Shown here: one piece after another, positions 12,551 to 24,187 of the stretch | Layout of the letters: every line of letters starts with the position of its first letter | Numbering within the stretch: position 1 is the stretch's first letter | IMG/VR virus record: IMGVR_UViG_3300011113_000640 | Span: 256,542 to 320,541 of that record | Strand: one strand, 5' to 3' | DNA length: 64,000 nt | Program-made: the position numbers and the translations under genes | Notes under the pieces: generated by a model | What the model saw: the letters and a program-made list of their open reading frames with translations, nothing else | Told to the model about the DNA's origin: nothing | Databases searched by the model: none

Positions 12551-13461
12551 TGGGCGATGTTGTTTCTATGTCTGTAAAGTAATTGTTCTAACAATCTCAC
12601 ATGTTTGTTATAATACATGGTCACAGGAACATTGTCAAATTGACTGGGTCGCATGTCACTGAGACTTTGTATGGTAGCAAGGCCAATTTGACTGGTGGCC
12701 TGTGTCAGGATTCGTGCAATCTCATCCTGACGCTGAGATCGCATGGTACGATTGGCAATCACAATATTGAACACTGTGGGTGCAGTTATGCCTTGTTCCG
12801 CCAGAGTTTTCACTGCCGGCAAGTCTGGATGACGCTTGGGGCAACTCATGGCCAACATTTGTAGCCGTGGATTTCTGGCTTTCATTTGTTGATAGTTGGC
12901 CACTCGTTCCAATACCATGTTCACAGAACCATCACCGGTCATCAGCAACAAGGCATCCATGTTGCTTTTGAAAGGCACATACCGCACTGTGAAACCATAG
13001 CGTGATGCTAATTGTAAAGCGGTCAAGTGTGCGGCATTGCCTATGCCCACACCGCCCACGACCAATTCACGCCGACCTTGTAGGCTGGCCACACCCTGAC
13101 GTTCATCGCCGACATTGGTTATAACCCCCCAGCAGGCATCGCCCATGCTCCATACAGGATCATAGTCCGTGAGATTCAAGCGTCCGGCCACGGTTTGTTC
13201 TACAAATTTGGGTGCCACGATGGCTACACGGTTCTGTGGTTGTTCGTCCATGTACCGCACGGCCAAGATTTGTTCGCCGCCGGGCCGGAATTCCAATATA
13301 AAATTGTATTGTGATTGGTTGCGATTGGCCTGTTCTATAATTCGAAACATAGCCGGCGATCCTGAGTGGCTGGCACTGTAAGGACTTACTATGGTTATAG
13401 TTTCTGCACTCAATACAAAATTTGACCAAAAGGTCAACATTATTAATGCTAATTTTATCAT
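12547..13461 (-). CDS. Bug/TctC family (tripartite tricarboxylate transporter-type) periplasmic solute-binding protein
   Basis: Signal peptide, EFRPGG, YVPFKS, RHPDLPAVKTLAEQG. Confidence 0.8.
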   Translation of the reverse strand: MIKLALIMLTFWSNFVLSAETITIVSPYSASHSGSPAMFRIIEQANRNQSQYNFILEFRPGGEQILAVRYMDEQPQNRVAIVAPKFVEQTVAGRLNLTDYDPVWSMGDACWGVITNVGDERQGVASLQGRRELVVGGVGIGNAAHLTALQLASRYGFTVRYVPFKSNMDALLLMTGDGSVNMVLERVANYQQMKARNPRLQMLAMSCPKRHPDLPAVKTLAEQGITAPTVFNIVIANRTMRSQRQDEIARILTQATSQIGLATIQSLSDMRPSQFDNVPVTMYYNKHVRLLEQLLYRHRNNIAQ

Positions 13462-13530
13462 TGTTTCTCCTAAATTTTTAATTTTTAAGAGCTTGCAGAA
13501 GAACTCTGCTACGGCTCGGCGTTATGTATT

Positions 13531-13559
13531 ATGATACAATAAAGACATCACTATGTCAA
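13531..13559 (-). promoter_or_regulatory. Sigma70-type promoter for the Bug/PP-loop operon
   Basis: TTGACA-17 bp-TATCAT. Confidence 0.65.
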
Positions 13560-13617
13560 GCGTCGATTTGAATGCCGACGTCGGAGTGATCCGGCGTTGC
13601 AGGATTTATTTATATGT

Positions 13618-13782
13618 TCAACGGCCTCGGCCGGCACTTCTTGTTGGAGGTTTTTTGCCTATCACAGGTGCCCGTTGTTTGACGGTTTTCCTTTCCACCT
13701 GTGGAGCATCATCATTTTCAGGATGATGGATTCCTTTTTTCTTGTCTGCGGCCTTCTTTAAGAAATCGCTCATTTTGCTCAT
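13618..13782 (-). CDS. Small basic hypothetical protein
   Basis: Start MSKMSDFL with AAGGA RBS directly after tRNA-Thr. Confidence 0.65.
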   Translation of the reverse strand: MSKMSDFLKKAADKKKGIHHPENDDAPQVERKTVKQRAPVIGKKPPTRSAGRGR

Positions 13783-13799
13783 AGTTGTTTCCTTGTTAA

Positions 13800-13883
13800 T
13801 GGTGCCCCCGGGGTGAATCGAACACCCTTTGAGTTTCCTCGACGGATTACAAATCCGTTGCAATCCCACTATGCGACAGGGGC
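13800..13883 (-). tRNA. tRNA-Thr(UGU) with a long variable arm
   Basis: GCCCCTG/CGGGGGC acceptor, ACGGA-TTTGTAA-TCCGT anticodon arm, 14-nt variable region, TTCGATT T loop, encoded CCA. Confidence 0.85.
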
Positions 13884-13896
13884 TTGGTTGTGATCA

Positions 13897-14367
13897 TTAA
13901 ATGATTTTTCCTGTCGCAGCATCAACTGTCACAGGTGTGTGTTGCGCAAATGTAAATGTGTATGCAGGATTTTTCTGACTGGCCGTCTGTTTCAATGTGC
14001 AGTCAGACCAAACTTCTGTTATGCCGCTTTTGGTCAAAATCTCCACGGCCTGACTGCAATTTATCGCAGGCGGATAAGTCCAGGGCTGACAATCCTTTAC
14101 ACGACTGTCATCTGGAAAGGGACCTGTGGCATGACCCGTGTTGCTGATCACAATGGCTGTAGGCCGATTGTCACGGGCACCCAGCCAGCAAGTGTAACAG
14201 TCACCACCATTGACACTGTTGGCCAACAGGAATTTACTTCCGTGTTGTACCAAATCAATAACACTTTTGGCGCCCCAGACCTGCTGATCAAAACTCAACG
14301 TCGACATCAGTCCAACTTGTCTGACATAACTCAAAATGCGATTCAGTATGTTGTTAAAGATTTTCAT
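13897..14367 (-). CDS. Hypothetical protein
   Basis: 156-aa ORF; C-terminal VTVDAATGKII is PepSY-like (weak). Confidence 0.6.
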   Translation of the reverse strand: MKIFNNILNRILSYVRQVGLMSTLSFDQQVWGAKSVIDLVQHGSKFLLANSVNGGDCYTCWLGARDNRPTAIVISNTGHATGPFPDDSRVKDCQPWTYPPAINCSQAVEILTKSGITEVWSDCTLKQTASQKNPAYTFTFAQHTPVTVDAATGKII

Positions 14368-14585
14368 GATTGCTCCGGGGATATTTGATCAGCCATGTCA
14401 ATTGCAGGCTCTTTGTAGCCAGCTCTGCGTTTCAACAAGTCGATCCTGCGTTGAATTTTGGCCTGTTTCTTATTGGCCTGTGTTTTTTCTTTTAATTCGG
14501 TGAGTTGCTTTACACTGAGACTGACGATCCGGACCTCACCGTTTTTGGTGTAGCCAGGTTTTTTGCGATTGAGAGTTTTTGCCAT
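14364..14585 (-). CDS. Small basic hypothetical protein
   Basis: 73 aa Lys/Arg-rich ORF. Confidence 0.65.
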   Translation of the reverse strand: MAKTLNRKKPGYTKNGEVRIVSLSVKQLTELKEKTQANKKQAKIQRRIDLLKRRAGYKEPAIDMADQISPEQS

Positions 14586-14640
14586 GATTGTGATCCTGTT
14601 TGATAATTTTACTTAGTGTTATCACGGCAAGTTTTTAAAA

Positions 14641-15492
14641 TTATTGACATTCCTGCCAGGTCCAAAATCCGTTGTAAAATTCCGGCAAACGCCGGGCTGT
14701 TGGATCCCACGAAAACAGGAATTTTTTTCCAGCCCGAGGAACTAGTAATTTTTGTGGCGGAGGCCAATCGGTGGTATAGCTTATGCCTAGACATGGCAAT
14801 CCTTGATAACTGGTATGATCTTTGACAACCACCGTGGCAGATTTGTATTCTGTGAGATCCAAAACGAACTCAATTTTTTGATCACAGGTGCCGGGTCCAA
14901 TCTTGACTATGCCGTCAAATGTTTGACTGGGTTTTATCAAGTTTGTGTTGTTCACAGCATCGTAAAAACCTCGGGGCAAGGAATCATAGTTCAGCATGAC
15001 TCTTGGTTGGCAGTCTGATAAATTGTTATCGAGCTGACCTTCGTAGACCGCAACATCTATGGCCCAGACATCAGGCACACTGACGTAAGGTGTTTTGAAT
15101 ATCTGGTTGGCATGACTCCAGATTTTTTTCATGGTTGAGTTGGTTATAAACTGACATCCTAAGGGTTCGCACAGAAAAATGTCAATATTTTGGGGAACAT
15201 CGTCGGGAGTCAGTGAGAGAAAATCAGCAGTGCTCACTGAGTGCCTGCCATGGTATCCTGCGTGATCCAGGATGTCACGGGTCAACGCAGTTCTGGCCGA
15301 TCTAACGTCAACTCCGTAGTAGTGGCTGGCACCAAATTCAAGACAGTATGCACCCAGCAAACCAACGCCGGTGCCTACTTCGAATACAGTTCGATCTTTG
15401 ACAAGATTTTTAAGGATTTCTCGATACCAATTAGATCTAGGTGTATCATTGATGTAGGTCAAGGCCACATTTACTTCAGGATGTCTTATCAT
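14641..15492 (-). CDS. Class I SAM-dependent methyltransferase, PRMT-like
   Basis: INDTPRSNWY pre-motif, VFEVGTGVGLL motif I, DIFLCEPLG. Confidence 0.75.
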   Translation of the reverse strand: MIRHPEVNVALTYINDTPRSNWYREILKNLVKDRTVFEVGTGVGLLGAYCLEFGASHYYGVDVRSARTALTRDILDHAGYHGRHSVSTADFLSLTPDDVPQNIDIFLCEPLGCQFITNSTMKKIWSHANQIFKTPYVSVPDVWAIDVAVYEGQLDNNLSDCQPRVMLNYDSLPRGFYDAVNNTNLIKPSQTFDGIVKIGPGTCDQKIEFVLDLTEYKSATVVVKDHTSYQGLPCLGISYTTDWPPPQKLLVPRAGKKFLFSWDPTARRLPEFYNGFWTWQECQ

Positions 15493-16078
15493 GATCTAGG
15501 TTGACCCATGTGGTTATTTCTCCTATGCAAGTATTGGATTTAGAATTTATACAAAGTTCTAGCTGGCTGATAATATCTTGGACATTGACGCCATGGCCAG
15601 TCCAAGTAGGTCTGGAACGACCTATGGGAGTATCCAGTCTATCTACTGTTATCAAACTGGTACGAAAATTTACCTGGCCAATTCGAAAGGCCTGAGTCCA
15701 TTGTAGACTTGCATGTTTGAGAGCCGCCTTGTTGGAATTGTAGCTTTCCCAACCCGGAAAAGGTGCAGATGTATCTTCACTGCCCACCCCACCTATGTTT
15801 ATGATATGTCCACCCTTGCCACGTTCTTGCCACAGCATAGCCACTTCGGTCAGCAGCTGAGTTTGACCATATAGTGTTTGGCTTTGACCAAACACTCCAT
15901 CATAGGCGTTGTTGACGAATACATCATAATTCAAACTGAGTTCGGCTATCTTAGCACGCTGGGTCAAAATATCATGACCGGTTGATCTACTGACACTGGT
16001 GGCATCAAACTTTTTAACCAATTCTAAACCCAGACCTTGGTTGCCACCTGTGACTAGAAAAGTTTTGAGATTGGCCAT
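15476..16078 (-). CDS. Short-chain dehydrogenase/reductase
   Basis: TGGNQGLG, VFVNNA, YNSNK (YxxxK). Confidence 0.85.
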   Translation of the reverse strand: MANLKTFLVTGGNQGLGLELVKKFDATSVSRSTGHDILTQRAKIAELSLNYDVFVNNAYDGVFGQSQTLYGQTQLLTEVAMLWQERGKGGHIINIGGVGSEDTSAPFPGWESYNSNKAALKHASLQWTQAFRIGQVNFRTSLITVDRLDTPIGRSRPTWTGHGVNVQDIISQLELCINSKSNTCIGEITTWVNLDHDKTS

Positions 16079-16084
16079 TTAATT

Positions 16085-16160
16085 TGGTACACCCAAGGGG
16101 ATTCGAACCCCTGTTGCAGCCGTGAAAGGGCCGAGTCCTGGGCCTCTAGACGATGGGTGC
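16085..16160 (-). tRNA. tRNA-Glu(UUC)
   Basis: 76-nt cloverleaf, CGGCC-CTTTCAC-GGCTG anticodon arm, GGTTCGAATCC, encoded CCA. Confidence 0.95.
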
Positions 16161-16163
16161 ATG

Positions 16164-16322
16164 TTACTTCATTCTCAACTGCTGAGCAAATTTTTTGACA
16201 ATCAGATTTGCCTTCTTGTTGGATTCTGTGATGCTTCTGCTGGCAGCCGATCGTTTTTCGGTCTTGGTCCACTGTCCAGCGATAGTTCTGCTTAGTTCAC
16301 CTGCACTTTGACGCTTTGCCAT
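16164..16322 (-). CDS. Small basic protein (52 aa; not in ORF track)
   Basis: Read manually: MAKRQSAGELSRTIAGQWTKTEKRSAASRSITESNKKANLIVKKFAQQLRMK. Confidence 0.65.
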   Translation of the reverse strand: MAKRQSAGELSRTIAGQWTKTEKRSAASRSITESNKKANLIVKKFAQQLRMK

Positions 16323-16324
16323 GT

Positions 16325-16546
16325 TTATTTTACCTTTATCAAATAATCAGTCATATTAAAAGTGCCACTCTGTACTTCTTTGAGTGCATCAATGGGCGTG
16401 ACCCAAGAGTTGGTTTCTCGAGCCCGGCGCTTCATTTCTCTCAGTCGTTGCGCAGCAGCGATCACAAGATCATATCGGCCGCCGGCATAGGCCACACAGC
16501 GTTCGGTATCAATTTCACTGCTACGACTTTCGATTCTGGTGCTCAT
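16325..16546 (-). CDS. rpoZ: RNA polymerase omega subunit homologue
   Basis: RYDLVIAAAQRLREM ... ALKEV matches the RpoZ core pattern. Confidence 0.75.
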   Translation of the reverse strand: MSTRIESRSSEIDTERCVAYAGGRYDLVIAAAQRLREMKRRARETNSWVTPIDALKEVQSGTFNMTDYLIKVK

Positions 16547-16568
16547 GACTTCTCCTTGTAAAAAGTTA

Positions 16569-16597
16569 ATTATACACTAAAATATGGCGCTGGTCAA
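16569..16597 (-). promoter_or_regulatory. Sigma70-type promoter for the rpoZ operon
   Basis: TTGACC-17 bp-TATAAT. Confidence 0.8.
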
Positions 16598-16615
16598 ACA
16601 CTTTATAAATATCCA

Positions 16616-17332
16616 ATGTGCCCGCAACACCTTAGTTCACATTTTGCCAATCAAGAACTTAATTGGATTCAGACTGACTCATATGAACAATATCAAAAAA
16701 ATCTCATTGAAAAACAAGATGAACTAGAACAGTTTGGTTGGATCGATCAAACTTTTACCTATCGATATAACAGTCAAGGATTCAGAAGTGCCGAGTTTGA
16801 AGAATCTGTTCCCAGTGCGATGTTTCTTGGATGTAGCCACACGCTGGGAGTAGGATTACCTATGGAAGCTACCTTTTCGCACATAGTCAGCACCAGTTTA
16901 AATCTTAAAAATTTCAATCTGGGTGTTCCGGGTAGTAGCAATGATACTGCATTCCGTTTGGCGCATTATTACATTCCTCGATTGAAACCAACCATTGTGG
17001 TTTTTCTATCAACTGAACGAACCAGATTTGAATTGTTTACAGAAAACAACGAAAACGATATTTTATCCTATAACAACATGACCAATTCTCTTCAATTTGT
17101 CAGAGAAGAGTTGAAGCTATTTTATCGTCATTGGATAATGAATAACAACAACGTTGATATGCATTATGCAAAAAATGTTGGAGCCATTCAACAGCTATGT
17201 TCTGCAAACAATATCAAATTTTATCACAGAGAATTTTTAAAGTTTCCGTTGATAGACAAAGCAAGAGATCTAGCGCACTATGGAATTAAATCTAACAATA
17301 TTGTCGCCAAGAAAATTCTAGCAGATCTTTAA
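16616..17332 (+). CDS. SGNH-hydrolase-like hypothetical protein
   Basis: FLGCSHTLG, NLGVPGSSND and D..H near the C-terminus; preceded by TATAAATA at 16604-16611. Confidence 0.55.
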   Translation: MCPQHLSSHFANQELNWIQTDSYEQYQKNLIEKQDELEQFGWIDQTFTYRYNSQGFRSAEFEESVPSAMFLGCSHTLGVGLPMEATFSHIVSTSLNLKNFNLGVPGSSNDTAFRLAHYYIPRLKPTIVVFLSTERTRFELFTENNENDILSYNNMTNSLQFVREELKLFYRHWIMNNNNVDMHYAKNVGAIQQLCSANNIKFYHREFLKFPLIDKARDLAHYGIKSNNIVAKKILADL

Positions 17333-18267
17333 CCTATTAGCTTGGCCAGGTGTGATCTATTGTAGCGAGCAATAGTTTGTAAATTGTCAATGATGTCAAT
17401 GGTAGACATTGTTTCTTTCATGGCTTGCCATCTAGCCGGCCCTTCGAGTCGATCGTAGCTTTCATCCCAACAACTACTATAAGTTTGGAATCCAATATCT
17501 TGTAACCTTTTTAAATAATTTCGCGGACCATAAACCAACACAGGCTTGCCAGCCATGATAGGCCTTACAGTTTTTTCAGTGGGAAAGAATGTATCACCCA
17601 GTGTATATGTTTCGGCAACAATTTCAATTTGGAATTGATTGTAGTAACCTAGTATGCCGCTGTTGGTCTTTGGCTCTCTGACAAATTGATCTCTAACCCT
17701 GTGTCCGTCAATGCTGGTAACTGGACAACAAGTAAGCCACCCAATAATGTCGGTGTTGAGCCAATCATCGGGTTTTTCTAAATTAATTGGAGCAGTTTCT
17801 TTGATCCAAGGCGGCGCCTCGTCTGTGTTCATAACACTTAACAATGTGTTTCCTTGTTGCCAAAGATCATAGAGTATTCTTGCTCGAGCAAAAGTTCTGC
17901 GACCCATAAAGTAGCCAAACAAGCAAGCACCATCGGCAACAGGTGCAACATCGGTCCAGTACTTGCGGCTCATTTCAAAAAAATGACTAAGGGAGACTTT
18001 ACCTATGTTTAAATTTGCGTACGGTGTTTGCTCGTGCATGTTAGGATTTCTAGCAATACTGATTGTTTTGGGGTCTCTGCCGGTGGCAACACAGTGTTGA
18101 TTTAACATGTCCACAATGCCCAGTGCTTGCATGCTAGGACCTTCATAACGGAAATCTATTTCGACATGGGCAGAAGGATCAATATTGCTGAGACAATTTT
18201 TAACCTCCGCTGGGTTGCTCCAAGAATCTCCACACACTCTTAAAGGAATAACAATCGGTTTATTCAA
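17329..18267 (-). CDS. Putative glycosyltransferase with GT10-like C-terminal motif
   Basis: IEIVAET...FFPTEKTVRPIMAGKP. Confidence 0.45.
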   Translation of the reverse strand: MNKPIVIPLRVCGDSWSNPAEVKNCLSNIDPSAHVEIDFRYEGPSMQALGIVDMLNQHCVATGRDPKTISIARNPNMHEQTPYANLNIGKVSLSHFFEMSRKYWTDVAPVADGACLFGYFMGRRTFARARILYDLWQQGNTLLSVMNTDEAPPWIKETAPINLEKPDDWLNTDIIGWLTCCPVTSIDGHRVRDQFVREPKTNSGILGYYNQFQIEIVAETYTLGDTFFPTEKTVRPIMAGKPVLVYGPRNYLKRLQDIGFQTYSSCWDESYDRLEGPARWQAMKETMSTIDIIDNLQTIARYNRSHLAKLIG

Positions 18268-18314
18268 ACTACTCTTTGCTTTCTTTTTTCAATATTTAAT
18301 AATTATAGTTAATC

Positions 18315-18391
18315 TGGTGCCCCGGGAAGGATTCGAACCTTCAACAGCTCCCTTCTGAGGAGAGTGCGTCTACCTGTTGCGCCACCGGGGT
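18315..18391 (-). tRNA. tRNA-Leu(CAG) with a short variable loop
   Basis: CTCTC-CTCAGAA-GGGAG anticodon arm, Leu-like D arm, 5-nt variable loop, A73, encoded CCA; A1-C72 mismatch. Confidence 0.85.
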
Positions 18392-18397
18392 TGACCT

Positions 18398-18988
18398 TTA
18401 CGTTACTTGCGTGGTACCGTTGCCGTTTTTAAAACCAATCTCGCCACCTTCTGCTTCAATCCTTTTGATCACATCTTCAAACAGGATAGGAGCAAAGTCG
18501 GTTTGTTCCACGCACACGCAATGATAACGAACATCAACTATGTCGGTGATCTTGCCATTGAATCCTGGCAACATCACCCGGTTGGCATGCAAGTGCCCGT
18601 GGATGTTGACACCAAAGCGACCAAGGCTTTCTGAGTGAATAGGAATATGGCTGAGTATCATGCCATTCATCACATGGTATCCACGCAGGCTACGGAAGTA
18701 AGGAGTGTAATCCTCATCCTTAAAGATATCGTGATTACCACGGATAAGAATCTTGTCACCATTGAGTCTATTCATAATAGGTAAACTCTTGCGGTTGATC
18801 ACTACATCACCCAAGTGATATACTTTATCGTTTGGACGCACACGCTCGTTCCAGGCCCGGACCATGAACTCGTCCATTTCGTTGGGATCTGTCCAAGGGC
18901 GAAGTTTTGTAACTCCATCGTTACGTGTGAAGCGACATACACCTGCGTGACCAAAGTGCGTATCGCTGACTAAAAATACTGCTGGCAT
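18398..18988 (-). CDS. Calcineurin-like metallophosphoesterase
   Basis: DTHFGH, HLGD, GNHD, GHLH motifs; start MPAVFLVSD. Confidence 0.9.
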   Translation of the reverse strand: MPAVFLVSDTHFGHAGVCRFTRNDGVTKLRPWTDPNEMDEFMVRAWNERVRPNDKVYHLGDVVINRKSLPIMNRLNGDKILIRGNHDIFKDEDYTPYFRSLRGYHVMNGMILSHIPIHSESLGRFGVNIHGHLHANRVMLPGFNGKITDIVDVRYHCVCVEQTDFAPILFEDVIKRIEAEGGEIGFKNGNGTTQVT

Positions 18989-19013
18989 AAGTGCCTCCTT
19001 TCTTTGTAAAACA

Positions 19014-19087
19014 TGGCGCCGGTCTAAGGAATCGAACCTCAATTAACGGTTTTGGAGACCGCTGTAATGCCATTATACCAGACCGAC
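19014..19087 (-). tRNA. tRNA-Trp(CCA)
   Basis: GCGGT-CTCCAAA-ACCGT anticodon arm, G73, encoded CCA. Confidence 0.95.
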
Positions 19088-19093
19088 CAAACT

Positions 19094-19171
19094 TGGAAGT
19101 GAGGGTGAGATTCGAACTCACGGCTTTAGGGATTTGCAGTCCCTTGCATTGGGCCACTCTGCCACCTCACT
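19094..19171 (-). tRNA. tRNA-Cys(GCA)
   Basis: AGGGA-CTGCAAA-TCCCT anticodon arm, U73, encoded CCA. Confidence 0.95.
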
Positions 19172-19254
19172 GTAATAAGCTCATAACAAAAATGTATTGG
19201 ATCCCTGGCAAAATCGCATATCGAATGCGATATATATTACTAGGAGTTATACAC

Positions 19255-19416
19255 ATGGAATACATTTTAACCTTATTTGTTTACTTCAACGGAGATCTCA
19301 TCCGTAAACTGGAACAACCAGTGGCCACTGCGGCCGTATGTCAACAACTCAGTGCAGGTCTCAACTTCCGTGATCCTGCTGTGACAGCCTTTGCCACTTG
19401 TCGTCCCAGATCATAA
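19255..19416 (+). CDS. Small protein inserted antisense within the tRNA cluster
   Basis: TAGGAG RBS then MEYILTLFVYFNG...TCRPRS (53 aa). Confidence 0.6.
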   Translation: MEYILTLFVYFNGDLIRKLEQPVATAAVCQQLSAGLNFRDPAVTAFATCRPRS

Positions 19417-19417
19417 T

Positions 19418-19491
19418 TGGTTGCGGGTGACGGAGTTGAACCGCCAACTGGAGCTTATGAGACTCCCGAGATACCATTTCTCTAACCCGCG
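19418..19491 (-). tRNA. Initiator-type tRNA-Met(CAU) with non-canonical anticodon stem
   Basis: C1-A72 mismatch, G2-C71, C3-G70, A11-U24, A73; anticodon stem GGAGT/GCTCC. Confidence 0.85.
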
Positions 19492-19497
19492 TCTGTT

Positions 19498-19671
19498 TCA
19501 CTGTTCCTGTTCCATTCTACGGAACTGTTCCTGCGCCCGAATCATAGCAGACGCACGATCGATCTTGTTCTGAAACAGTTGTTGCTTTTGTGCTTCGGTC
19601 AAGAATGCCGAACTCACATCATAAGCCTGTTTCACAATAGCGTCGTTGAGTTTTTTGTAATCAATTGACAT
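19498..19671 (-). CDS. Small hypothetical protein (57 aa), first gene after the attenuator
   Basis: Start MSIDYKKL with strong AGGAAAGGA RBS. Confidence 0.7.
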   Translation of the reverse strand: MSIDYKKLNDAIVKQAYDVSSAFLTEAQKQQLFQNKIDRASAMIRAQEQFRRMEQEQ

Positions 19672-19690
19672 CTTTTTCCTTTCCTCTATA

Positions 19691-19724
19691 AAATAAAAAA
19701 CCCCGGAGTGTTTAGTTCCAGGGC
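19691..19724 (-). terminator. Intrinsic terminator (attenuator terminator)
   Basis: GCCCTGGA-9 nt loop-TCCGGGGT followed by TTTTTATTT. Confidence 0.8.
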
Positions 19725-19750
19725 TTTTGAATATCGTATGATGTTTCGTA

Positions 19751-19852
19751 CTATTCCGTGCCCTGAATCTCATCCTCGCAAATCTGCCATAGACCAACCA
19801 CCTCATTGAAGTTGGGTTGTGGTACAAGATAGGTCACTTTGCGATTCAACAT
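19751..19852 (-). CDS. Putative leaderless leader peptide (33 aa)
   Basis: MLNRKVTYLVPQPNFNEVVGLWQICEDEIQGTE; ATG is the 7th nt after the TATAAT box. Confidence 0.6.
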   Translation of the reverse strand: MLNRKVTYLVPQPNFNEVVGLWQICEDEIQGTE

Positions 19853-19858
19853 AGTAGT

Positions 19859-19887
19859 ATTATATAGAGTTATTTATATCTTGTCAA
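19859..19887 (-). promoter_or_regulatory. Consensus sigma70 promoter with TATAAATA late motif in its spacer
   Basis: TTGACA-17 bp-TATAAT; TATAAATA at 19871-19878. Confidence 0.9.
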
Positions 19888-19902
19888 CCGGGTTTGGTCA
19901 AC

Positions 19903-19933
19903 AAAAAAGCCCCCGGGGGAGCTTTTTTTTTTT
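19903..19933 (-). terminator. Terminator after the porin gene
   Basis: GC-rich inverted repeat flanked by A and T tracts. Confidence 0.75.
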
Positions 19934-19949
19934 GGATCACTTTTAAAAA

Positions 19950-20690
19950 TTAATTAAAAGTTTTTGTCAAGCCAACTACCACGGCATTCTTGTAGAGCTT
20001 TTGACCGCTCACAGTGTTTGCAGTTTCAAAAGTTCTTGTTGTGCCAGAGTTGGTGAAATACTTTACACTGACGTCAAAGTCTTTGGGTAGACTGTAAACA
20101 AAACCAGCATTGATGTCATTGTAATCGTAGGCTGTGCTGTTGGCCACATTGGTACGACCATAGTGTGCTACAACAGCCAGATTCTTGATCACAGGAACTG
20201 GTAACTTGCCATCTGCTTGCACGTAGGTTGTGCCTTGAGCATTGGCTGTACCGAAATAGCCATCTCCCAAGGTTCTGCTATACTTGGCAGAAATGATGTC
20301 TTTGTAACCTAGGCCGACATAGCCTTCATAGGTGTCAAAGTTTGAACCAGTTTTTGCTGAAGTGGTGGCACGTGGATAGAAATAGTTGTAGCTACCGATG
20401 TCGATCGAGATGCCCTTGAAGATTTCTTTCTTGTAACCAGCGTAGAGATCACTCTCTACACCTGCACCATTGGTGTAGACTTGGCTAGAAACACTGCTGT
20501 TCCAGTTACCAATGTACAAGCCACTCTTGTGTGCATAGTCGATGCCGCCCTGAACTGCAGGAGCATTTTGGGTTTGGCTAACACCGCGGAAACGGTAGTC
20601 GCTGGTCAAACCTAAATTGCCGGTGAGTTGAGCTTGAGCCGAGGCAACAAAGCCAGCGGACAAGGCCAATGCTAATAATAATTTTTTCAT
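19950..20690 (-). CDS. TorF-family putative porin (TIGR02001-like outer-membrane protein)
   Basis: Signal peptide, SDYRFRGVSQT, PAVQGGIDY, terminal aromatic beta-strand (TKTFN). Confidence 0.85.
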   Translation of the reverse strand: MKKLLLALALSAGFVASAQAQLTGNLGLTSDYRFRGVSQTQNAPAVQGGIDYAHKSGLYIGNWNSSVSSQVYTNGAGVESDLYAGYKKEIFKGISIDIGSYNYFYPRATTSAKTGSNFDTYEGYVGLGYKDIISAKYSRTLGDGYFGTANAQGTTYVQADGKLPVPVIKNLAVVAHYGRTNVANSTAYDYNDINAGFVYSLPKDFDVSVKYFTNSGTTRTFETANTVSGQKLYKNAVVVGLTKTFN

Positions 20691-20766
20691 GCTTGAAGTT
20701 TCCTTTTAAAAGAATGCTGGGTGATCACCCAACTCTTTATTTAGTGGTTTTTACTTAGTGACCAAC

Positions 20767-20793
20767 AAAAAAGCCTGATTTCTCAGGCTTTTT
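20767..20793. terminator. Bidirectional terminator
   Basis: AAAAAAGCCTGA-TTTC-TCAGGCTTTTT. Confidence 0.85.
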
Positions 20794-20814
20794 ATTTTGA
20801 AACAACAAAAACTA

Positions 20815-21369
20815 TTAGAAATTCCGAGTATAATTAAAATTTATAATTTTTTGATCTACATCACCTTGCACACGATCATATCTTACACCAATTGTATCTT
20901 TTTTGGTAACAGCATAACCTACTCCGGCTCTCCAGGTGCGAGTAGTATCGTTCATGGCAGTGTTAAATGGAGTGCGAAAACGCCAGCCAGCACGAACAGT
21001 AAAGCCTGATGAGCCAAATGGAGCGGTAACCCCGGGTTCTACGCTATAGTATCCATAACTGCCAGTGCTGATATATCGTTCGCCAACACCTGTGCGAGTG
21101 TACAAGGTCGCAAACTTTGTCGGCAACAATCCAGTTACTCCGGCTTCAAGGCGAGTGCTGGCCAATGCATTGCTACCATTTTGGTTGATTTGTAAAACTC
21201 CTACATCACCAAGAAAGTTTTTGTTGATGTTTTCTCTGACTGCCAAGCTCCAACTGTTTTGATCTGCTGATTTGACATTGTCGACATTGCCATATTCGAC
21301 CGTGGCGGATCCTGCGTGGACCAAACCTGCGGCAAACACCAAACTTAGAATAGTTAATAGTTTTTTCAT
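20815..21369 (-). CDS. Outer-membrane beta-barrel protein
   Basis: Signal peptide, alternating amphipathic strands, C-terminal FNYTRNF BAM-type motif. Confidence 0.75.
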   Translation of the reverse strand: MKKLLTILSLVFAAGLVHAGSATVEYGNVDNVKSADQNSWSLAVRENINKNFLGDVGVLQINQNGSNALASTRLEAGVTGLLPTKFATLYTRTGVGERYISTGSYGYYSVEPGVTAPFGSSGFTVRAGWRFRTPFNTAMNDTTRTWRAGVGYAVTKKDTIGVRYDRVQGDVDQKIINFNYTRNF

Positions 21370-21436
21370 AATTGTCCTTAAAGGTAATTTAATGATATCG
21401 TATCTAGATTTAGTTATGACTCAAGATTAACGGATC

Positions 21437-21462
21437 AAAAAAAACCCGCCGAAGCGGGTTTT
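21437..21462 (-). terminator. Terminator after tmRNA
   Basis: AAAACCCGC-TTCG-GCGGGTTTTTTTT. Confidence 0.9.
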
Positions 21463-21464
21463 GA

Positions 21465-21745
21465 CATTTTTGGTAACAAGGCATGTCTGCCCCGGAGATC
21501 ATGCCGCTAAGGCAAAGACCTCGTCGTTAGCTGCGTTTGCAGTTATCATTTTGCTTCTACGACCAGGCTTTCCCAGTCCTAACGGGTTTCGCATTCCCGT
21601 GTTGCCGTCCGCATTGGCTCACCATGTCGATCCTGATTCATCCCCACCCAAGCATACTGGACAATACACTTGGGTGGAGATGCTGGGATTTGCACCCAGG
21701 TCCATAGTGCCTTCACTTGGAAGGGATTACAACAATTCGAAAAAC
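21465..21745 (-). ncRNA. ssrA: Circularly permuted two-piece tmRNA (outer ends approximate)
   Basis: Acceptor piece (T arm CTGGG-TGCAAAT-CCCAG, CATCTCCA) precedes the coding piece (5' GGGGATG at 21645); G3-U70 pair; tag ORF ANAANDEVFALAA* at 21499-21540. Confidence 0.9.
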
Positions 21746-21746
21746 G

Positions 21747-22004
21747 TTAACTCAACTTACGTGCCATTTGAGGCGCTGGCGTAAACGAATTCACTATAGC
21801 CAAATAACCGTCGGCTGACGCTTCAGTGCTGAATAATCTTATAAAATTGTCTGAGTAAGTGATTCCGTCTGAATTTGTAGTCGTCTGAGTATTAACTGAC
21901 ATGGTAACCGCTGCCACGGCTGGATCAGTGAGATATGCACTTAATTGATTCGTTTCTGCTTCAGTGCGAGCACGTCCGTAAATAACTTCTGTAAAATATA
22001 GCAT
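21747..22004 (-). CDS. Hypothetical protein
   Basis: 85 aa, AAGGA RBS, TATAAATA upstream at 22029-22036. Confidence 0.65.
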   Translation of the reverse strand: MLYFTEVIYGRARTEAETNQLSAYLTDPAVAAVTMSVNTQTTTNSDGITYSDNFIRLFSTEASADGYLAIVNSFTPAPQMARKLS

Positions 22005-22088
22005 GGCAATTCCTTATATTAATGTTGTTATTTATACGAACTCAAGATATACGAACTCAAGACTTATGTTTGGATTAACAATCAAATC

Positions 22089-22261
22089 CTACTTGCCAAA
22101 CAAATGAGCCACAATGCCCATGCCCACAAATACTGTCATGGCCGCAACGGCCGCCCAGGGGATGTTTTTTAATATGTTCATTGCTCGTCCTGATGTTCGT
22201 TGATCCACATGATACCATAACAAACTACCACAGCCAACAAGGCAAAAAATATCAACCACAT
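22089..22261 (-). CDS. Two very small hydrophobic ORFs (22178-22261, 27 aa; 22089-22181, 30 aa)
   Basis: Read manually; ATGA-coupled; each a single TM-like segment. Confidence 0.5.
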
Positions 22262-22263
22262 GA

Positions 22264-22455
22264 TTAATTATAGCCTTTTATGTGATTGTTGTCAATCGGG
22301 GGATTTCCTCGGGCCATGACATTTTCTAACTGCCGGGCACGATCACGTTCGGGCGGCAACGGACCACAACCCAGTCTTGCCCACTCGTCTTCGGAGTAGT
22401 AATAGCGTTCCACGGGCGGTTTCTTTTGCTGTTCCACGGTCATCGTATTTACCAT
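22264..22455 (-). CDS. Small hypothetical protein
   Basis: 63-aa ORF after tRNA-Ile2. Confidence 0.6.
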   Translation of the reverse strand: MVNTMTVEQQKKPPVERYYYSEDEWARLGCGPLPPERDRARQLENVMARGNPPIDNNHIKGYN

Positions 22456-22459
22456 GTTT

Positions 22460-22534
22460 TGGTAGGCCTTGAAAGAATTGAACTTTCACTCCATCGATTA
22501 TGAGTCGATTGCTTTACCATTAAGCTAAAGGCCC
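22460..22534 (-). tRNA. tRNA(CAU), most likely Ile2 (lysidine type)
   Basis: GGGCCTT acceptor, ATCGA-CTCATAA-TCGAT arm resembling bacterial Ile2, paired 1-72, encoded CCA. Confidence 0.85.
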
Positions 22535-22543
22535 AATAATTGT

Positions 22544-22572
22544 ATTGTAGCATCATGGCCCATAGTTGTCAA
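22544..22572 (-). promoter_or_regulatory. Sigma70 promoter for tRNA-Ile2, overlapping the amidohydrolase 3' end
   Basis: TTGACA-17 bp-TACAAT. Confidence 0.75.
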
Positions 22573-23530
22573 GCCTGTCACGCAAACCAAGGTAATTTTT
22601 GAAATAAAGAAGATCCTTTTGTTGAGCGGTAATGGGCAAAGATTCTACTGTGTTTACATCATGCAAGCTGTTGGCACCGCCCATGTCTCGGTCATGTGGC
22701 CAGTCTGTGGCAAACAACATGCGATTCCATCCCAATAGTTCGGCATTTTCAATAAAACCCGGCATTTCTGGTTCGGTGGTAAACCAAAAATTTCTGCGGA
22801 GATATAGCATGGGATCTGCAAATCCCAACTCCAGCATGCGGTCCTGCAGTTCATAGATCCAGTTGGTATCACGTTCGGCAATTACAATTTTGAGATCGGG
22901 GTAGCGATCCAGGGTTCCACCAATGATAAGGCTGGCTATGGTTCTTTTCCAAAAATGATGTGCTGGCCAGATTTCTTTAAGTAGTTGTAGTTCTTTGGCC
23001 CAGATGCTGGTGTCAGATTCAATAACGTCATTGATTTCGGTATGGTGCAGATACACCGGCATTTTTGTCTTGGCTATTTTCGCAAACAACACATCGTATT
23101 CTGGCATGAATCCCCAGGCTGGTGTTTCGCTCAAAAACACAGCCAAAAAATTCTGTTCAGCACGCAGTTCTAATTCTGCCAGGCTAGCCGTTAGATCCTG
23201 CAGGGCCAACCAAATAGTGGCACTGAAACCAGAGTTGTGGCTGACAATTTGATGCAGGTGTTCATTGTAGATCTGCATGACTTTGCGACCCACGTGTTTG
23301 GGTAATCTATAGTTGATGTTCAAACTGATGCCCATGAAGTTCAGCAACTGGTGATCAATTTTGAGTGCAGAGAATTCTTTCAGGCGATCATCGATATTGG
23401 TATAGCTGTGTCGTTTTTTTTCACAATACTGCTGATACCATTCCTGTATGTCAGGATGATCAAACACCGCAGGTGGAGGAGTATAGTGTGCATCAGCGTC
23501 AATGATCATATGATATTTATTGTTGTTCAA
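22553..23530 (-). CDS. Amidohydrolase family 2 metallo-hydrolase
   Basis: DADAH, YLHH, MLFATDWPH motifs. Confidence 0.85.
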   Translation of the reverse strand: MNNNKYHMIIDADAHYTPPPAVFDHPDIQEWYQQYCEKKRHSYTNIDDRLKEFSALKIDHQLLNFMGISLNINYRLPKHVGRKVMQIYNEHLHQIVSHNSGFSATIWLALQDLTASLAELELRAEQNFLAVFLSETPAWGFMPEYDVLFAKIAKTKMPVYLHHTEINDVIESDTSIWAKELQLLKEIWPAHHFWKRTIASLIIGGTLDRYPDLKIVIAERDTNWIYELQDRMLELGFADPMLYLRRNFWFTTEPEMPGFIENAELLGWNRMLFATDWPHDRDMGGANSLHDVNTVESLPITAQQKDLLYFKNYLGLRDRLDNYGP

Positions 23531-23898
23531 GGCCCGTAGTTGTCAAGAAATTGTTCCAAATTACCGTAGAGATTGACCATGACCGCTTCTCGGCTTCCAA
23601 AAAACACTATCTTTTTGGGTATGCCTTTGGTTGCCGAAATATAGTAAGGCATCTGCATTTTTCTATCCAATTTGAGCATGAGACGCTTGTTGAACGTCAA
23701 GGGATCTGTGATGGCATACTCGTAGTGCTCAAGATCCAACCGCCGAGACAATACATCATATCCAATGCCGGTCAAGCGCATGCCACCGGTACGTCTGATG
23801 TTGAACCACCAACTTGGCAAAGCTGTGTCCACAGGCACACGATCACTTTCGGGCAAGAGCTCGATGAGTTGTTGAGTCAGTAGATGTTTGTCACGCAC
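23527..23898 (-). CDS. Hypothetical protein (GTG start inferred)
   Basis: Longer ORF-track start overlaps the next gene; WWFNIRRTGGMRLT core. Confidence 0.65.
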   Translation of the reverse strand: MRDKHLLTQQLIELLPESDRVPVDTALPSWWFNIRRTGGMRLTGIGYDVLSRRLDLEHYEYAITDPLTFNKRLMLKLDRKMQMPYYISATKGIPKKIVFFGSREAVMVNLYGNLEQFLDNYGP

Positions 23899-23899
23899 A

Positions 23900-24187
23900 T
23901 CAAGGATATACCTGATCACCGGCTCGTAGCAACACCACGGTGAATCGGTCGGTCTTGAACTGTGTGTTGAGTTTCTTGGCCAAGTTGCGGGCATGTCCAG
24001 GATTGCTGAAACTAACCTTTTTGTATTTGGGCCCAGGATACTGCACCAGGAGATTTGATGTTTTGAGATTGATGGGTTGATTGTCAAAGAACACAGCCCA
24101 GATACCTTCACTGGCCAGGACCTGTTCGGTCTTGTAAGTGGTCTTGTTGGTGTGTTCGATCAACACCGTGGGTTTTGGGCGACTCAT
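23900..24187 (-). CDS. Hypothetical phage protein
   Basis: 95 aa, MSRPKPTVL...YKKVSFSNPGHA. Confidence 0.75.
   Translation of the reverse strand: MSRPKPTVLIEHTNKTTYKTEQVLASEGIWAVFFDNQPINLKTSNLLVQYPGPKYKKVSFSNPGHARNLAKKLNTQFKTDRFTVVLLRAGDQVYP

Follow-up and report, generated by a model that had tools for sequence, protein, structure and literature searches.

In the trp operon attenuator (trpL) and the other amino-acid-operon leader-peptide attenuators of Proteobacteria (his, leu, thr, pheA, ilv), a promoter-proximal short ORF carries regulatory codons, an antiterminator shares an arm with an intrinsic terminator, and the position of the ribosome decides which hairpin forms, with the stop codon lying about 60 nt before the end of the terminator. 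The pheM leader of the pheST operon, which probably carries several Phe codons, appears to place an aminoacyl-tRNA synthetase of the cell under comparable control, reporting on the supply of a charged tRNA. In mycobacteria, leaderless polycysteine short ORFs form the first cistron of operons for cysteine metabolism, and a ribosome stalled at their runs of Cys codons remodels downstream RNA structure and unmasks a ribosome-binding site, which is translational control (Canestrari et al., bioRxiv 10.1101/834739). T-box riboswitches also couple transcription antitermination to tRNA status, though by binding the uncharged tRNA directly and with no ORF, whereas the TnaC arrest peptide of the tna operon has an essential Trp residue at a fixed spacing from the stop codon, senses free tryptophan and blocks Rho.

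Phage tRNA genes have been known for over 50 years and their role is still debated, with codon compensation, replacement of degraded host tRNAs, and escape from tRNA-cleaving defences all proposed (PMC10264068), yet in our literature searches we found nothing published on how their expression is controlled. Here we evaluated a candidate ribosome-sensing attenuator that lies in front of tRNA genes of a giant freshwater phage, within a 64,000-nt stretch (hereafter the window) of a 320-kb IMG/VR jumbo-phage contig (IMGVR_UViG_3300011113_000640, positions 256,542 to 320,541). Compared with trpL and the other amino-acid-operon attenuators, the locus has the same overall arrangement and stop-codon position, but the genes that would be regulated are tRNA genes of a phage rather than biosynthetic genes, the leader has one Trp codon and one Cys codon rather than runs of a single codon, the mRNA is inferred to be leaderless, and no 1:2 anti-antiterminator or pause hairpin was found, so an untranslated leader should read through. 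The 1:2 hairpin is a feature of the trp type and does not define the whole class of ribosome-mediated attenuators. Relative to pheM, the tRNA genes themselves are the target, and in a virus; relative to the mycobacterial short ORFs, an intrinsic terminator would be controlled, Trp is combined with Cys, and the targets are phage tRNAs; and relative to T-boxes, no specifier loop or T-box match was found and the element presumably depends on a translated ORF. Searching positions 13000-24000 with Rfam covariance models (cmscan, E-value mode), including Trp_leader, His_leader, Leu_leader, Thr_leader and T-box, gave no hit within 19690-19890, with only tRNAs, the tmRNA and sub-threshold chance hits returned, and we found no paper describing the element.

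Sequence features of the locus

To assess whether the locus is as it had been described from sequence alone, we first re-examined each feature on the minus strand, which revealed that all features of the preliminary description, from the promoter through to tRNA-Leu, were correctly placed (Table 1). The promoter is the only 12/12 match in 17000-21500, and it carries a conserved ATAAATA motif inside the spacer, a motif that is unique in the 64-kb window. Folding gave -16.7 kcal/mol for the antiterminator (z = -3.7 against dinucleotide shuffles) and -15.8 kcal/mol for the terminator including its A-U extension (z = -4.5), so that both hairpins fold better than shuffled sequence. From promoter to U-tract (19887-19690) the element is about 190 nt long and appears self-contained.

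Table 1. Coordinates of the candidate attenuator and neighbouring features in the window.
Feature	Coordinates	Strand	Description
Hairpin after the upstream Gcw_chp gene	19903-19931		A-run / GC palindrome / T-run
Sigma-70 promoter	19859-19887	-	TTGACA (19887-19882), 17-nt spacer, TATAAT (19864-19859)
Leader ORF	19751-19852	-	33 codons, inferred leaderless; ATG at 19852, 7 nt after the -10 hexamer; stop codon TAG (19753-19751)
Trp codon	19787-19789	-	TGG, codon 22; proposed sentinel codon; 22 nt upstream of antiterminator arm 1
Cys codon	19778-19780	-	TGC, codon 25; proposed sentinel codon; 13 nt upstream of arm 1, about one ribosome leading edge
Antiterminator hairpin (predicted)	19717-19767	-	Arm 1 TTCAGGGC (19767-19760) pairs over 8 bp with arm 2 GCCCTGGA (19724-19717); inner GAATA/TATTC stem; inner stem-loop contains the leader's stop codon
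Intrinsic terminator (predicted)	19690-19724	-	Arm 2 GCCCTGGA (19724-19717) pairs with TCCGGGGT (19707-19700); 9-nt loop; U-tract 19699-19690
57-aa ORF	19498-19671	-	Starts right after the terminator; AGGAAA-type RBS
tRNA-Met(CAT)	19418-19491	-	Initiator-like C1-A72 mismatch; lacks the three G-C pairs in the anticodon stem
Insertion	19172-19417		246 nt, with a 53-aa ORF on the opposite strand
tRNA-Cys(GCA)	19094-19171	-	
tRNA-Trp(CCA)	19014-19087	-	
Metallophosphoesterase	18398-18988	-	Calcineurin-like, phrog_547
tRNA-Leu(CAG)	18315-18391	-	
Promoter-like site	19665-19694	+	11/12 match

Evaluating possible alternative sources of the tRNA transcripts, we found no sigma-70-like site of at least 9/12 on the minus strand between the attenuator and tRNA-Leu. 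The insertion between tRNA-Met and tRNA-Cys, which the preliminary description did not mention, could however disturb co-transcription in the window. The promoter-like site on the plus strand is not conserved in homologues whose small ORF begins differently, and we therefore treat it as chance.

Homologous leaders in uncultured freshwater phages

We next sought relatives of the element. Near and distant DNA searches of GenBank phages with 18200-20100 matched only tRNA genes, so there is no cultured relative of the element, but about 50 distinct homologous leaders were recovered from uncultured freshwater phage contigs in IMG/VR. These keep a consensus sigma-70 promoter with the spacer motif, an ATG 6-11 nt after the -10 hexamer, an open ORF of 25-48 codons, and a terminator with a U-tract. 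The exception in initiation is the most divergent lineage (loci L115 and L166; numbers with L denote our homologous loci), which replaces leaderless initiation with a 27-nt 5' UTR carrying a GAGA-type RBS and still keeps the ORF, Trp, Cys and the switch. A homology-free scan for a promoter, a near-leaderless short ORF and a terminator over all retrieved loci found only this family and no leader type with other sentinel codons. As the homologues are phylogenetically related, these counts overstate independence.

Conservation of the two mutually exclusive hairpins

In independent single-sequence folds, 30 of 31 leaders paired the terminator's 5' arm with a stretch ending 2-15 nt before the stop codon, with hairpin z-scores mostly between -2 and -6, and the antiterminator was always more stable than the terminator stem. 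Both hairpins showed compensatory changes. For the terminator, 93% of alignment cells were paired and 4 pairs changed on both sides, whereas for the antiterminator 10 of 16 pairs changed on both sides, and in the covariance-model alignment there were 41 double-change cells against 13 +/- 4 in shuffles (0 of 500 reaching the observed value), with the structure beating all slid registers. The window and L001 differ by matched changes in all three arms. Not every approach recovered these signals: RNAalifold on plain MAFFT alignments found only part of the terminator and nothing for the antiterminator, because the pairing register shifts between subgroups, which is why explicit structures and a covariance-model alignment were used instead. 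Similarly, a duplex test restricted to the terminator's 5' arm against the last 30 nt of the ORF was only marginal (median z about -1; 14 of 31 at or below 5% of genomic windows), as in many leaders the antiterminator also uses bases 5' of that arm, and whole-hairpin z-scores are clearer.

These observations bear on whether the locus is simply an ordinary small gene with its own leaky terminator, the alternative pairing being coincidental and the tRNAs being made by read-through or from unrecognised promoters. Terminators between phage early genes are probably common, and the same terminator hairpin, loop included, ends ordinary genes in Burkholderiales-type MAG contigs. We nevertheless consider this very unlikely, since the stop codon is embedded in a hairpin that overlaps the terminator arm in essentially all of about 50 variants, with compensatory changes, since the fast-evolving peptide (see below) argues against a functional protein, and since no promoter is predicted downstream.

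We also looked for an anti-antiterminator, including pairing of the 5' end with arm 1 in the window's subgroup, but this pairing does not outcompete the antiterminator. When the RNA was folded from the AUG to arm 2 the antiterminator was kept in 30 of 31 leaders, and no conserved upstream partner of arm 1 was seen. At full-length equilibrium, by contrast, the terminator plus a small hairpin is the minimum-energy fold, so the proposed switch depends on co-transcriptional kinetics.

Conserved Trp and Cys codons in a fast-evolving leader peptide

The leader peptides diverge almost completely, with a synonymous to non-synonymous ratio of about 1:2, and yet a Trp codon is present in every leader found and a Cys codon in all but one (the fragment L245); in the homology-free scan, 49 of 49 peptides had Trp and 48 had Cys. 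Cys varies only synonymously (TGC 25, TGT 25). For comparison, a random 33-codon phage window holds both residues with probability 0.18. The Cys codon is mostly 13-17 nt and the Trp codon 22-29 nt upstream of arm 1. The order of Trp and Cys is swapped in divergent lineages and the Trp-to-stop distance ranges from 7 to 25 codons, both of which argue for codon sensing rather than a structural or arrest motif.

It is possible that the conserved Trp and Cys instead act through the peptide or the short RNA, either through a nascent chain that arrests the ribosome in response to a small molecule, as TnaC does, or through the released peptide of about 33 aa or the terminated RNA of about 160 nt acting in trans, as peTrpL and rnTrpL do. 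Trp is likely the key residue of TnaC, parts of the peptide are conserved within subgroups (N-terminal motifs, CED, G-x-E ends), and the very strong promoter would produce large amounts of the short transcript. We regard this as doubtful, because the variable spacing and flipped codon order do not fit a fixed exit-tunnel arrest motif, the peptide evolves nearly neutrally outside a few codons, an arrest at the stop codon would favour termination rather than induction, and a trans role would not explain the conserved overlap between stop codon, antiterminator and terminator.

Linkage to tRNA genes

To connect the leaders to the genes that follow them, we compared downstream tRNA content, which revealed tRNA-Trp on the same strand in 36/36 loci with at least 1.3 kb of sequence and tRNA-Cys in 33/36. 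As both are part of larger tRNA arrays, their presence downstream is not specific on its own, and two loci with about 4 kb of downstream sequence (L126, L090) have a Cys codon in the leader but no tRNA-Cys gene. Two natural rearrangements show that the attenuator travels with the tRNA genes and not with the small protein gene next to it: in L214 the small ORF has its own promoter without an attenuator while the attenuator sits directly before a tRNA array, and in L115 tRNA-Trp starts about 70-90 nt after the terminator with no ORF in between. Cultured phages that have the phosphoesterase but no nearby tRNAs lack the element.

Two parts of the preliminary description are not supported. It had proposed that failed initiation (fMet loss) would be sensed, but a tRNA-Met gene directly after the small ORF is seen only in the window's subgroup; and it had proposed that the phage would make "exactly those tRNAs" on demand, which overstates the case as the operons carry many other tRNAs (Glu, Gly, Asp, Tyr and more).

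We also asked whether the leader may be more than a Trp/Cys sensor, acting as a multi-codon sampler of the tRNA pool whose amino-acid content co-evolves with the tRNA array it gates, such that the phage would top up whichever of its tRNAs becomes limiting, for example after host tRNA decay or cleavage by anticodon nucleases. We found that 89% of downstream tRNA genes have a cognate codon in their own leader, against 62-65% in random phage coding windows of equal length (z = 5-6 excluding Trp, Cys and Met), and this excess survived a null matched for the number of distinct codons. A Mantel-Haenszel test stratified by anticodon gave an odds ratio of 2.9 (p = 0.003), cross-pairing stratified by leader length gave p = 0.04, and longer leaders went with larger arrays (Spearman 0.47). 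On the other hand, leader codons were not tuned to the downstream isoacceptors, with no enrichment at the level of synonymous codons (z = 0.4-0.6), Arg(TCG) was never matched (0 of 5), and the loci are phylogenetically related, so that this closed-loop tRNA homeostat remains a tentative and less likely reading.

A proposed model of ribosome-mediated attenuation

Taken in the absence of expression data, with transcription start, translation of the ORF, termination, the direction of the response and the signal sensed all inferred, the best reading of these patterns is classical ribosome-mediated transcription attenuation gating a phage tRNA operon, to which we assign a probability of roughly 0.7. 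In this model, host RNA polymerase starts at or within a few bases of the AUG, and as the RNA emerges a G-rich stretch at the end of the ORF pairs with the 5' arm of the downstream terminator. Because this antiterminator is made first and is at least as stable as the terminator, an untranslated leader, or one with a stalled ribosome, would let the polymerase read on into the small ORF, the tRNA genes and the phosphoesterase. A ribosome that translates smoothly to the stop codon would instead sit on the antiterminator's 5' arm and on the stop codon inside it, freeing the shared arm so that the terminator forms and transcription ends near 19692. The Trp and Cys codons lie just far enough upstream that a ribosome waiting there for Trp-tRNA or Cys-tRNA would leave the antiterminator intact, and the operon would therefore be switched on when these scarce tRNAs, or translation in general, become limiting, giving homeostatic expression of the phage's own tRNA-Trp, tRNA-Cys and neighbouring tRNAs. 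If so, this would be the first evidence that a virus measures tRNA supply and answers by making its own tRNAs, directly supporting the replacement or rescue view of phage tRNAs, and it would extend leader-peptide attenuation to genes for tRNAs themselves, to viruses, and to leaderless mRNAs in Proteobacteria-infecting phages.

Because each leader usually has a single Trp codon and a single Cys codon, sensitivity to one tRNA may be low, and it is possible that the switch works as described but reports whether ribosomes load on and traverse the leaderless ORF at all (70S or initiation-factor availability, global elongation rate, host shut-off or abortive-infection responses), with the Trp and Cys codons incidental or playing only a minor part. 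The lack of an anti-antiterminator, so that any failure to translate gives read-through, the conservation of leaderless initiation in all lineages but one, and the many tRNA species in the operons fit such a general sensor of translation capacity. We consider it unlikely, as it does not explain why Trp is invariant and Cys nearly so in peptides that otherwise diverge almost completely, nor the synonymous-only variation at Cys and the placement just upstream of arm 1, and as the lineage with a Shine-Dalgarno-type leader keeps Trp and Cys.

Neighbouring genes

The 57-aa ORF, the first gene of the presumed controlled unit, belongs to a conserved small helical protein family of unknown function, with Pfam, PHROG, NCBIfam and PDB searches giving no function for it and only a generic metallophosphoesterase call for the enzyme downstream. 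On the other side of the promoter, the hairpin that follows the Gcw_chp gene (-13.1 kcal/mol, z = -1.8) is probably a bidirectional intrinsic terminator that insulates the attenuator's promoter.

Anatomy of the leader region

To assess whether the features listed in the preliminary description are present, we first examined the minus strand of the window, which revealed that everything it had listed, from the promoter and the short ORF to the two competing hairpins and the downstream genes, is where that description had placed it. The promoter is a perfect TTGACA-17-TATAAT site and the only 12/12 site in 17000-21500, and an ATG follows 7 nt after its -10 hexamer to open a 33-codon ORF in which TGG is codon 22 and TGC is codon 25. 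Arm 1 can pair with arm 2, whereas arm 2 can alternatively pair with arm 3, which is followed by a U-tract. Folding of the RNA up to arm 2 gave the antiterminator at -16.7 kcal/mol (z = -3.7), while folding from just after a ribosome parked on the stop codon gave the terminator at -15.8 kcal/mol (z = -4.5), or about -12.6 kcal/mol for the terminator stem without the A-U extension that would still be inside the transcription bubble.

Downstream lie a 57-aa ORF, tRNA-Met(CAT), tRNA-Cys(GCA), tRNA-Trp(CCA), a metallophosphoesterase and tRNA-Leu(CAG), with no further sigma-70-like site of at least 9/12 on that strand before tRNA-Leu. On the opposite strand, an 11/12 promoter-like site (TTGACA-18-TAAAAT) points into the attenuator, but its TTGACA is the reverse complement of the first codons of the 57-aa ORF and is not conserved in homologues, so it is probably chance. 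The tRNA-Met has the C1-A72 mismatch typical of bacterial initiators, but it lacks the three G-C pairs in the anticodon stem. Between tRNA-Met and tRNA-Cys lies a 246-nt insertion with a 53-aa ORF on the opposite strand, which has an AGGAG RBS and is preceded by a 7-bp inverted repeat (ATCGCAT...ATGCGAT). This insertion is present only in two close relatives (loci L207 and L211; 88-92% nucleotide identity), whereas other relatives have the two tRNAs 17 nt apart, and it could interfere with co-transcription of the operon.

Coordinates of features in the window and in related loci (loci numbered with the prefix L)
Feature	Location	Strand	Sequence
Hairpin with flanking A- and T-runs, preceding the promoter	window 19931-19903		
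Promoter	window 19887-19859	-	
33-codon leader ORF	window 19852-19751	-	
Arm 1 (5' arm of the antiterminator)	window 19767-19760	-	TTCAGGGC
Arm 2 (shared arm)	window 19724-19717	-	GCCCTGGA
Arm 3 (3' arm of the terminator)	window 19707-19700	-	TCCGGGGT
Terminator hairpin, including its 9-nt loop	window 19700-19724		
Opposite-strand promoter-like site	window 19665-19694	+	
57-aa ORF	window 19498-19671	-	
Insertion between tRNA-Met and tRNA-Cys	window 19172-19417		
53-aa ORF in the insertion	window 19255-19416	+	
Two signal-peptide-bearing genes	window 19950-20690 and 20815-21369	-	
Permuted, two-piece tmRNA	window 21408-21764	-	tag ANAANDEVFALAA
Recurrences of the terminator hairpin on MAG contigs	L244:3578-3604, L246:7508-7534		
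Two copies of the promoter in L214	L214:3440-3500 and L214:4060-4295		
Most divergent leader (also L166)	L115:1159-1306		
Leader without a Cys codon	L245:1800-1970		
tRNAs with a CTA anticodon	L040:5729-5803, L082:2097-2172		
Examples of tRNAs with A at the wobble position	L001:4597-4674, L003:5544-5633		

Genomic context and predicted host

The window belongs to the 320,541-bp IMG/VR contig IMGVR_UViG_3300011113_000640. It carries a phage-type DNA polymerase (phrog_262) and eight tRNA/tmRNA genes, among them a permuted, two-piece tmRNA of the betaproteobacterial type (RF01850, 129 bits) about 1.5 kb upstream of the attenuator, with homologous tmRNA genes at the same relative position in many related loci (L010, L027, L037, L039, L042, L048, L050, L070, L082). 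GenBank phages have nothing similar apart from tRNAs, and no Rfam family matches the leader region. Just upstream of the attenuator lie two signal-peptide-bearing genes that look like outer-membrane beta-barrel proteins, one of them a clear Gcw_chp/TorF-family member (PF09694, E = 7e-47), which is unusual cargo for a phage.

The phage is uncultured, and its host is only inferred to be a betaproteobacterium from the tmRNA type and from identical terminator hairpins in Burkholderiales-type MAGs. The terminator hairpin, including its 9-nt loop (ACTAAACAC or ACTAAACAT), recurs almost identically as the terminator after phasin-like genes on Burkholderiales and Usitatibacteraceae MAG contigs (L244 and L246), and in the phage family the loop is more conserved than the leader peptide. 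It is possible that this is a host-type terminator that the phage has copied, or a loop with a function of its own, and it also hints at the host lineage.

A conserved family of leaders

We next sought homologues in IMG/VR by three independent routes, namely relatives of the phosphoesterase, the promoter motif, and relatives of the small ORF. A DNA profile and a homology-free scan for promoter, near-leaderless short ORF and terminator together gave about 50 distinct leaders, and the architecture scan found no other kind of leader in about 1.3 Mb of phage DNA. The members share the consensus promoter with an ATAAATA motif in the spacer (a motif that is unique in the 64-kb window), an ATG 6-11 nt after the -10 hexamer, an ORF of 25-48 codons, and the two alternative hairpins. 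The exception to leaderless initiation is the most divergent lineage (L115/L166), which instead has a 27-nt 5' UTR with a GAGA-type RBS and still keeps the ORF and the switch. This is good evidence that translation of the ORF is what matters.

Alternative hairpins and covariation

Folding each leader on its own revealed that in 30 of 31 the terminator's 5' arm pairs with a G-rich stretch ending 2-15 nt before the stop codon, such that the stop codon lies inside the resulting hairpin. Hairpin energies lie mostly 2-6 standard deviations below dinucleotide shuffles, and the antiterminator (-17 to -31 kcal/mol) is always more stable than the terminator stem (-10 to -18 kcal/mol). Stem sequences differ between lineages and change in step: in the window against locus L001, arm 1, arm 2 and arm 3 all carry matched substitutions, and L090, L126, L082, L102, L035, L115 and L169 each have their own arm 2 with matching arms 1 and 3.

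On a plain MAFFT alignment with a fixed structure, the terminator is 93% paired with four pairs changed on both sides, while the antiterminator is 73% paired with ten such pairs and is better than every slid register. A covariance-model alignment of 45 sequences, which leans towards the model, gave 41 double-change cells against 13 +/- 4 in shuffles (0 of 500), although counts over homologues are not phylogenetically independent. A coincidental terminator is hard to reconcile with this covariation. No conserved anti-antiterminator was found, and an untranslated leader should therefore read through. At full-length equilibrium the terminator plus a small hairpin is the minimum-energy structure, so the decision must be kinetic, as it is in classical attenuators.

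Conserved Trp and Cys codons

Evaluating the leader peptides further, we found that they diverge almost completely between lineages, and that within subgroups the ratio of synonymous to non-synonymous codon differences is about 1:2, which is close to neutral. Every leader nevertheless has a Trp codon, and all but one have a Cys codon, with TGC and TGT used 25 times each, whereas a random 33-codon window of these phages holds both residues with probability 0.18. The one leader without Cys (L245) has Trp and lies on a 2-kb fragment binned into a Flavobacteriales MAG, in which the contig ends 84 nt after the terminator. The nucleotide context around the two codons is not conserved, their order is reversed in several divergent lineages (L022, L102, L035, L213, L217), and the Trp-to-stop distance ranges from 7 to 25 codons. 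These observations speak against an RNA motif or a TnaC-like arrest peptide and for selection on the codons or amino acids themselves, and peptide-arrest or trans-acting roles fit the variable spacing and near-neutral peptide evolution poorly. In most leaders the Cys codon is 13-17 nt and the Trp codon 22-29 nt upstream of arm 1, which is probably about the distance from the A site to the leading edge of a ribosome, such that a ribosome waiting at these codons would just spare the antiterminator.

Association with downstream tRNA genes

To connect the leaders to the genes they might control, we examined the downstream sequence of each locus, which revealed tRNA-Trp(CCA) on the same strand in all 36 loci with at least 1.3 kb of sequence (89-3331 nt, median 1.0 kb) and tRNA-Cys(GCA) in 33 of them. 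Because the tRNAs sit in arrays, however, the presence of any one species downstream is weak evidence by itself. Gene order varies widely, with the small ORF and the phosphoesterase, then Trp, Cys, Gly, Glu, Asp, Tyr, Met and others. The small ORF after the terminator belongs to a conserved 51-62-aa helical family of unknown function with two sequence types and no hit in Pfam, PHROGs or NCBIfam.

Two natural rearrangements are informative. Locus L214 has two copies of the same special promoter (TTGACA, ATAAATA spacer motif, TACAAT), one driving the small ORF with no leader and the other driving the complete attenuator, which sits about 560 nt further on, directly before an array of twelve tRNA genes, so that the two are naturally uncoupled. 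In L115/L166 there is no small ORF, and tRNA-Trp begins about 70-90 nt after the terminator. Cultured phages with the closest phosphoesterases but no neighbouring tRNAs lack the element. The attenuator therefore goes with tRNA genes.

Proposed mechanism and comparison with known attenuators

On the basis of sequence, folding and comparison, and without transcript or translation data, the best-supported model is classical ribosome-mediated transcription attenuation in a two-hairpin form. In this model, full translation displaces the antiterminator and terminates transcription, whereas a ribosome stalled at the Trp or Cys codon, or absent altogether, leaves the antiterminator in place and lets the polymerase transcribe the tRNA operon, a logic of negative feedback on tRNA supply. 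The main rival is that the device reports translation capacity in general, but this does not explain the Trp/Cys conservation.

The proposed switch works like the trp-type leader-peptide attenuators and has their defining structural features, except for the 1:2 hairpin of the trp type and tandem regulatory codons. It shares leaderless sensory ORFs and Cys codons with the mycobacterial polycysteine ORFs, which act on translation (10.1101/834739). It is not a T-box and not a member of any Rfam leader family. Full-text searches for phage tRNA attenuators, leader peptides or regulation of phage tRNA clusters found nothing, and the closest context is the proposal that phage tRNAs replace host tRNAs targeted by defences (PMC10264068). 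We regard this as a familiar mechanism applied to a new class of target (tRNA genes) in a new setting (a virus).

Leader codons and the tRNA repertoire

Finally, we evaluated whether leader codons reflect the wider set of downstream tRNAs. Across all loci, 274 of 306 downstream tRNA genes have a cognate codon in their own leader, against about 191 expected from random coding windows of equal length (z = 11.5), and with 20 divergent representatives the count is 161 of 177 against 116 expected (z = 8.3), while leaving out Trp, Cys and Met gives z = 5-6. The excess persists against a null matched for the number of distinct codons, and when the last six codons are dropped. Cross-pairing leaders with other loci's tRNA sets gave fewer matches (148 +/- 4 against 161 observed; with length strata, p = 0.04), and a Mantel-Haenszel test stratified by anticodon gave an odds ratio of 2.9 (p = 0.003). 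At the level of synonymous codons, however, there is no tuning to the downstream isoacceptors (z = 0.4-0.6), and the loci are also related by descent. The pattern is therefore only suggestive, and we treat a leader that samples the whole array as an open possibility rather than a finding. In the most divergent member, L115, the 25-codon leader has two Cys codons and one Trp codon, and all nine downstream tRNA species except Arg(TCG) have cognate codons in that leader.

ARAGORN calls tRNAs with a CTA anticodon (amber-suppressor type) in two related phage loci (L040 and L082), and the L082/L218 leaders end in TAA, whereas most leaders end in TAG (32 TAG, 8 TAA, 7 TGA), which may hint at TAG reassignment in part of the clade. 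Several phage tRNAs in related loci (e.g. L001, L003, L112, L142 and L052) have A at the wobble position of the anticodon, namely Leu(AAG), Ser(ACT), Phe(AAA) and Thr(AGT), which is unusual for bacteria outside Arg(ACG).
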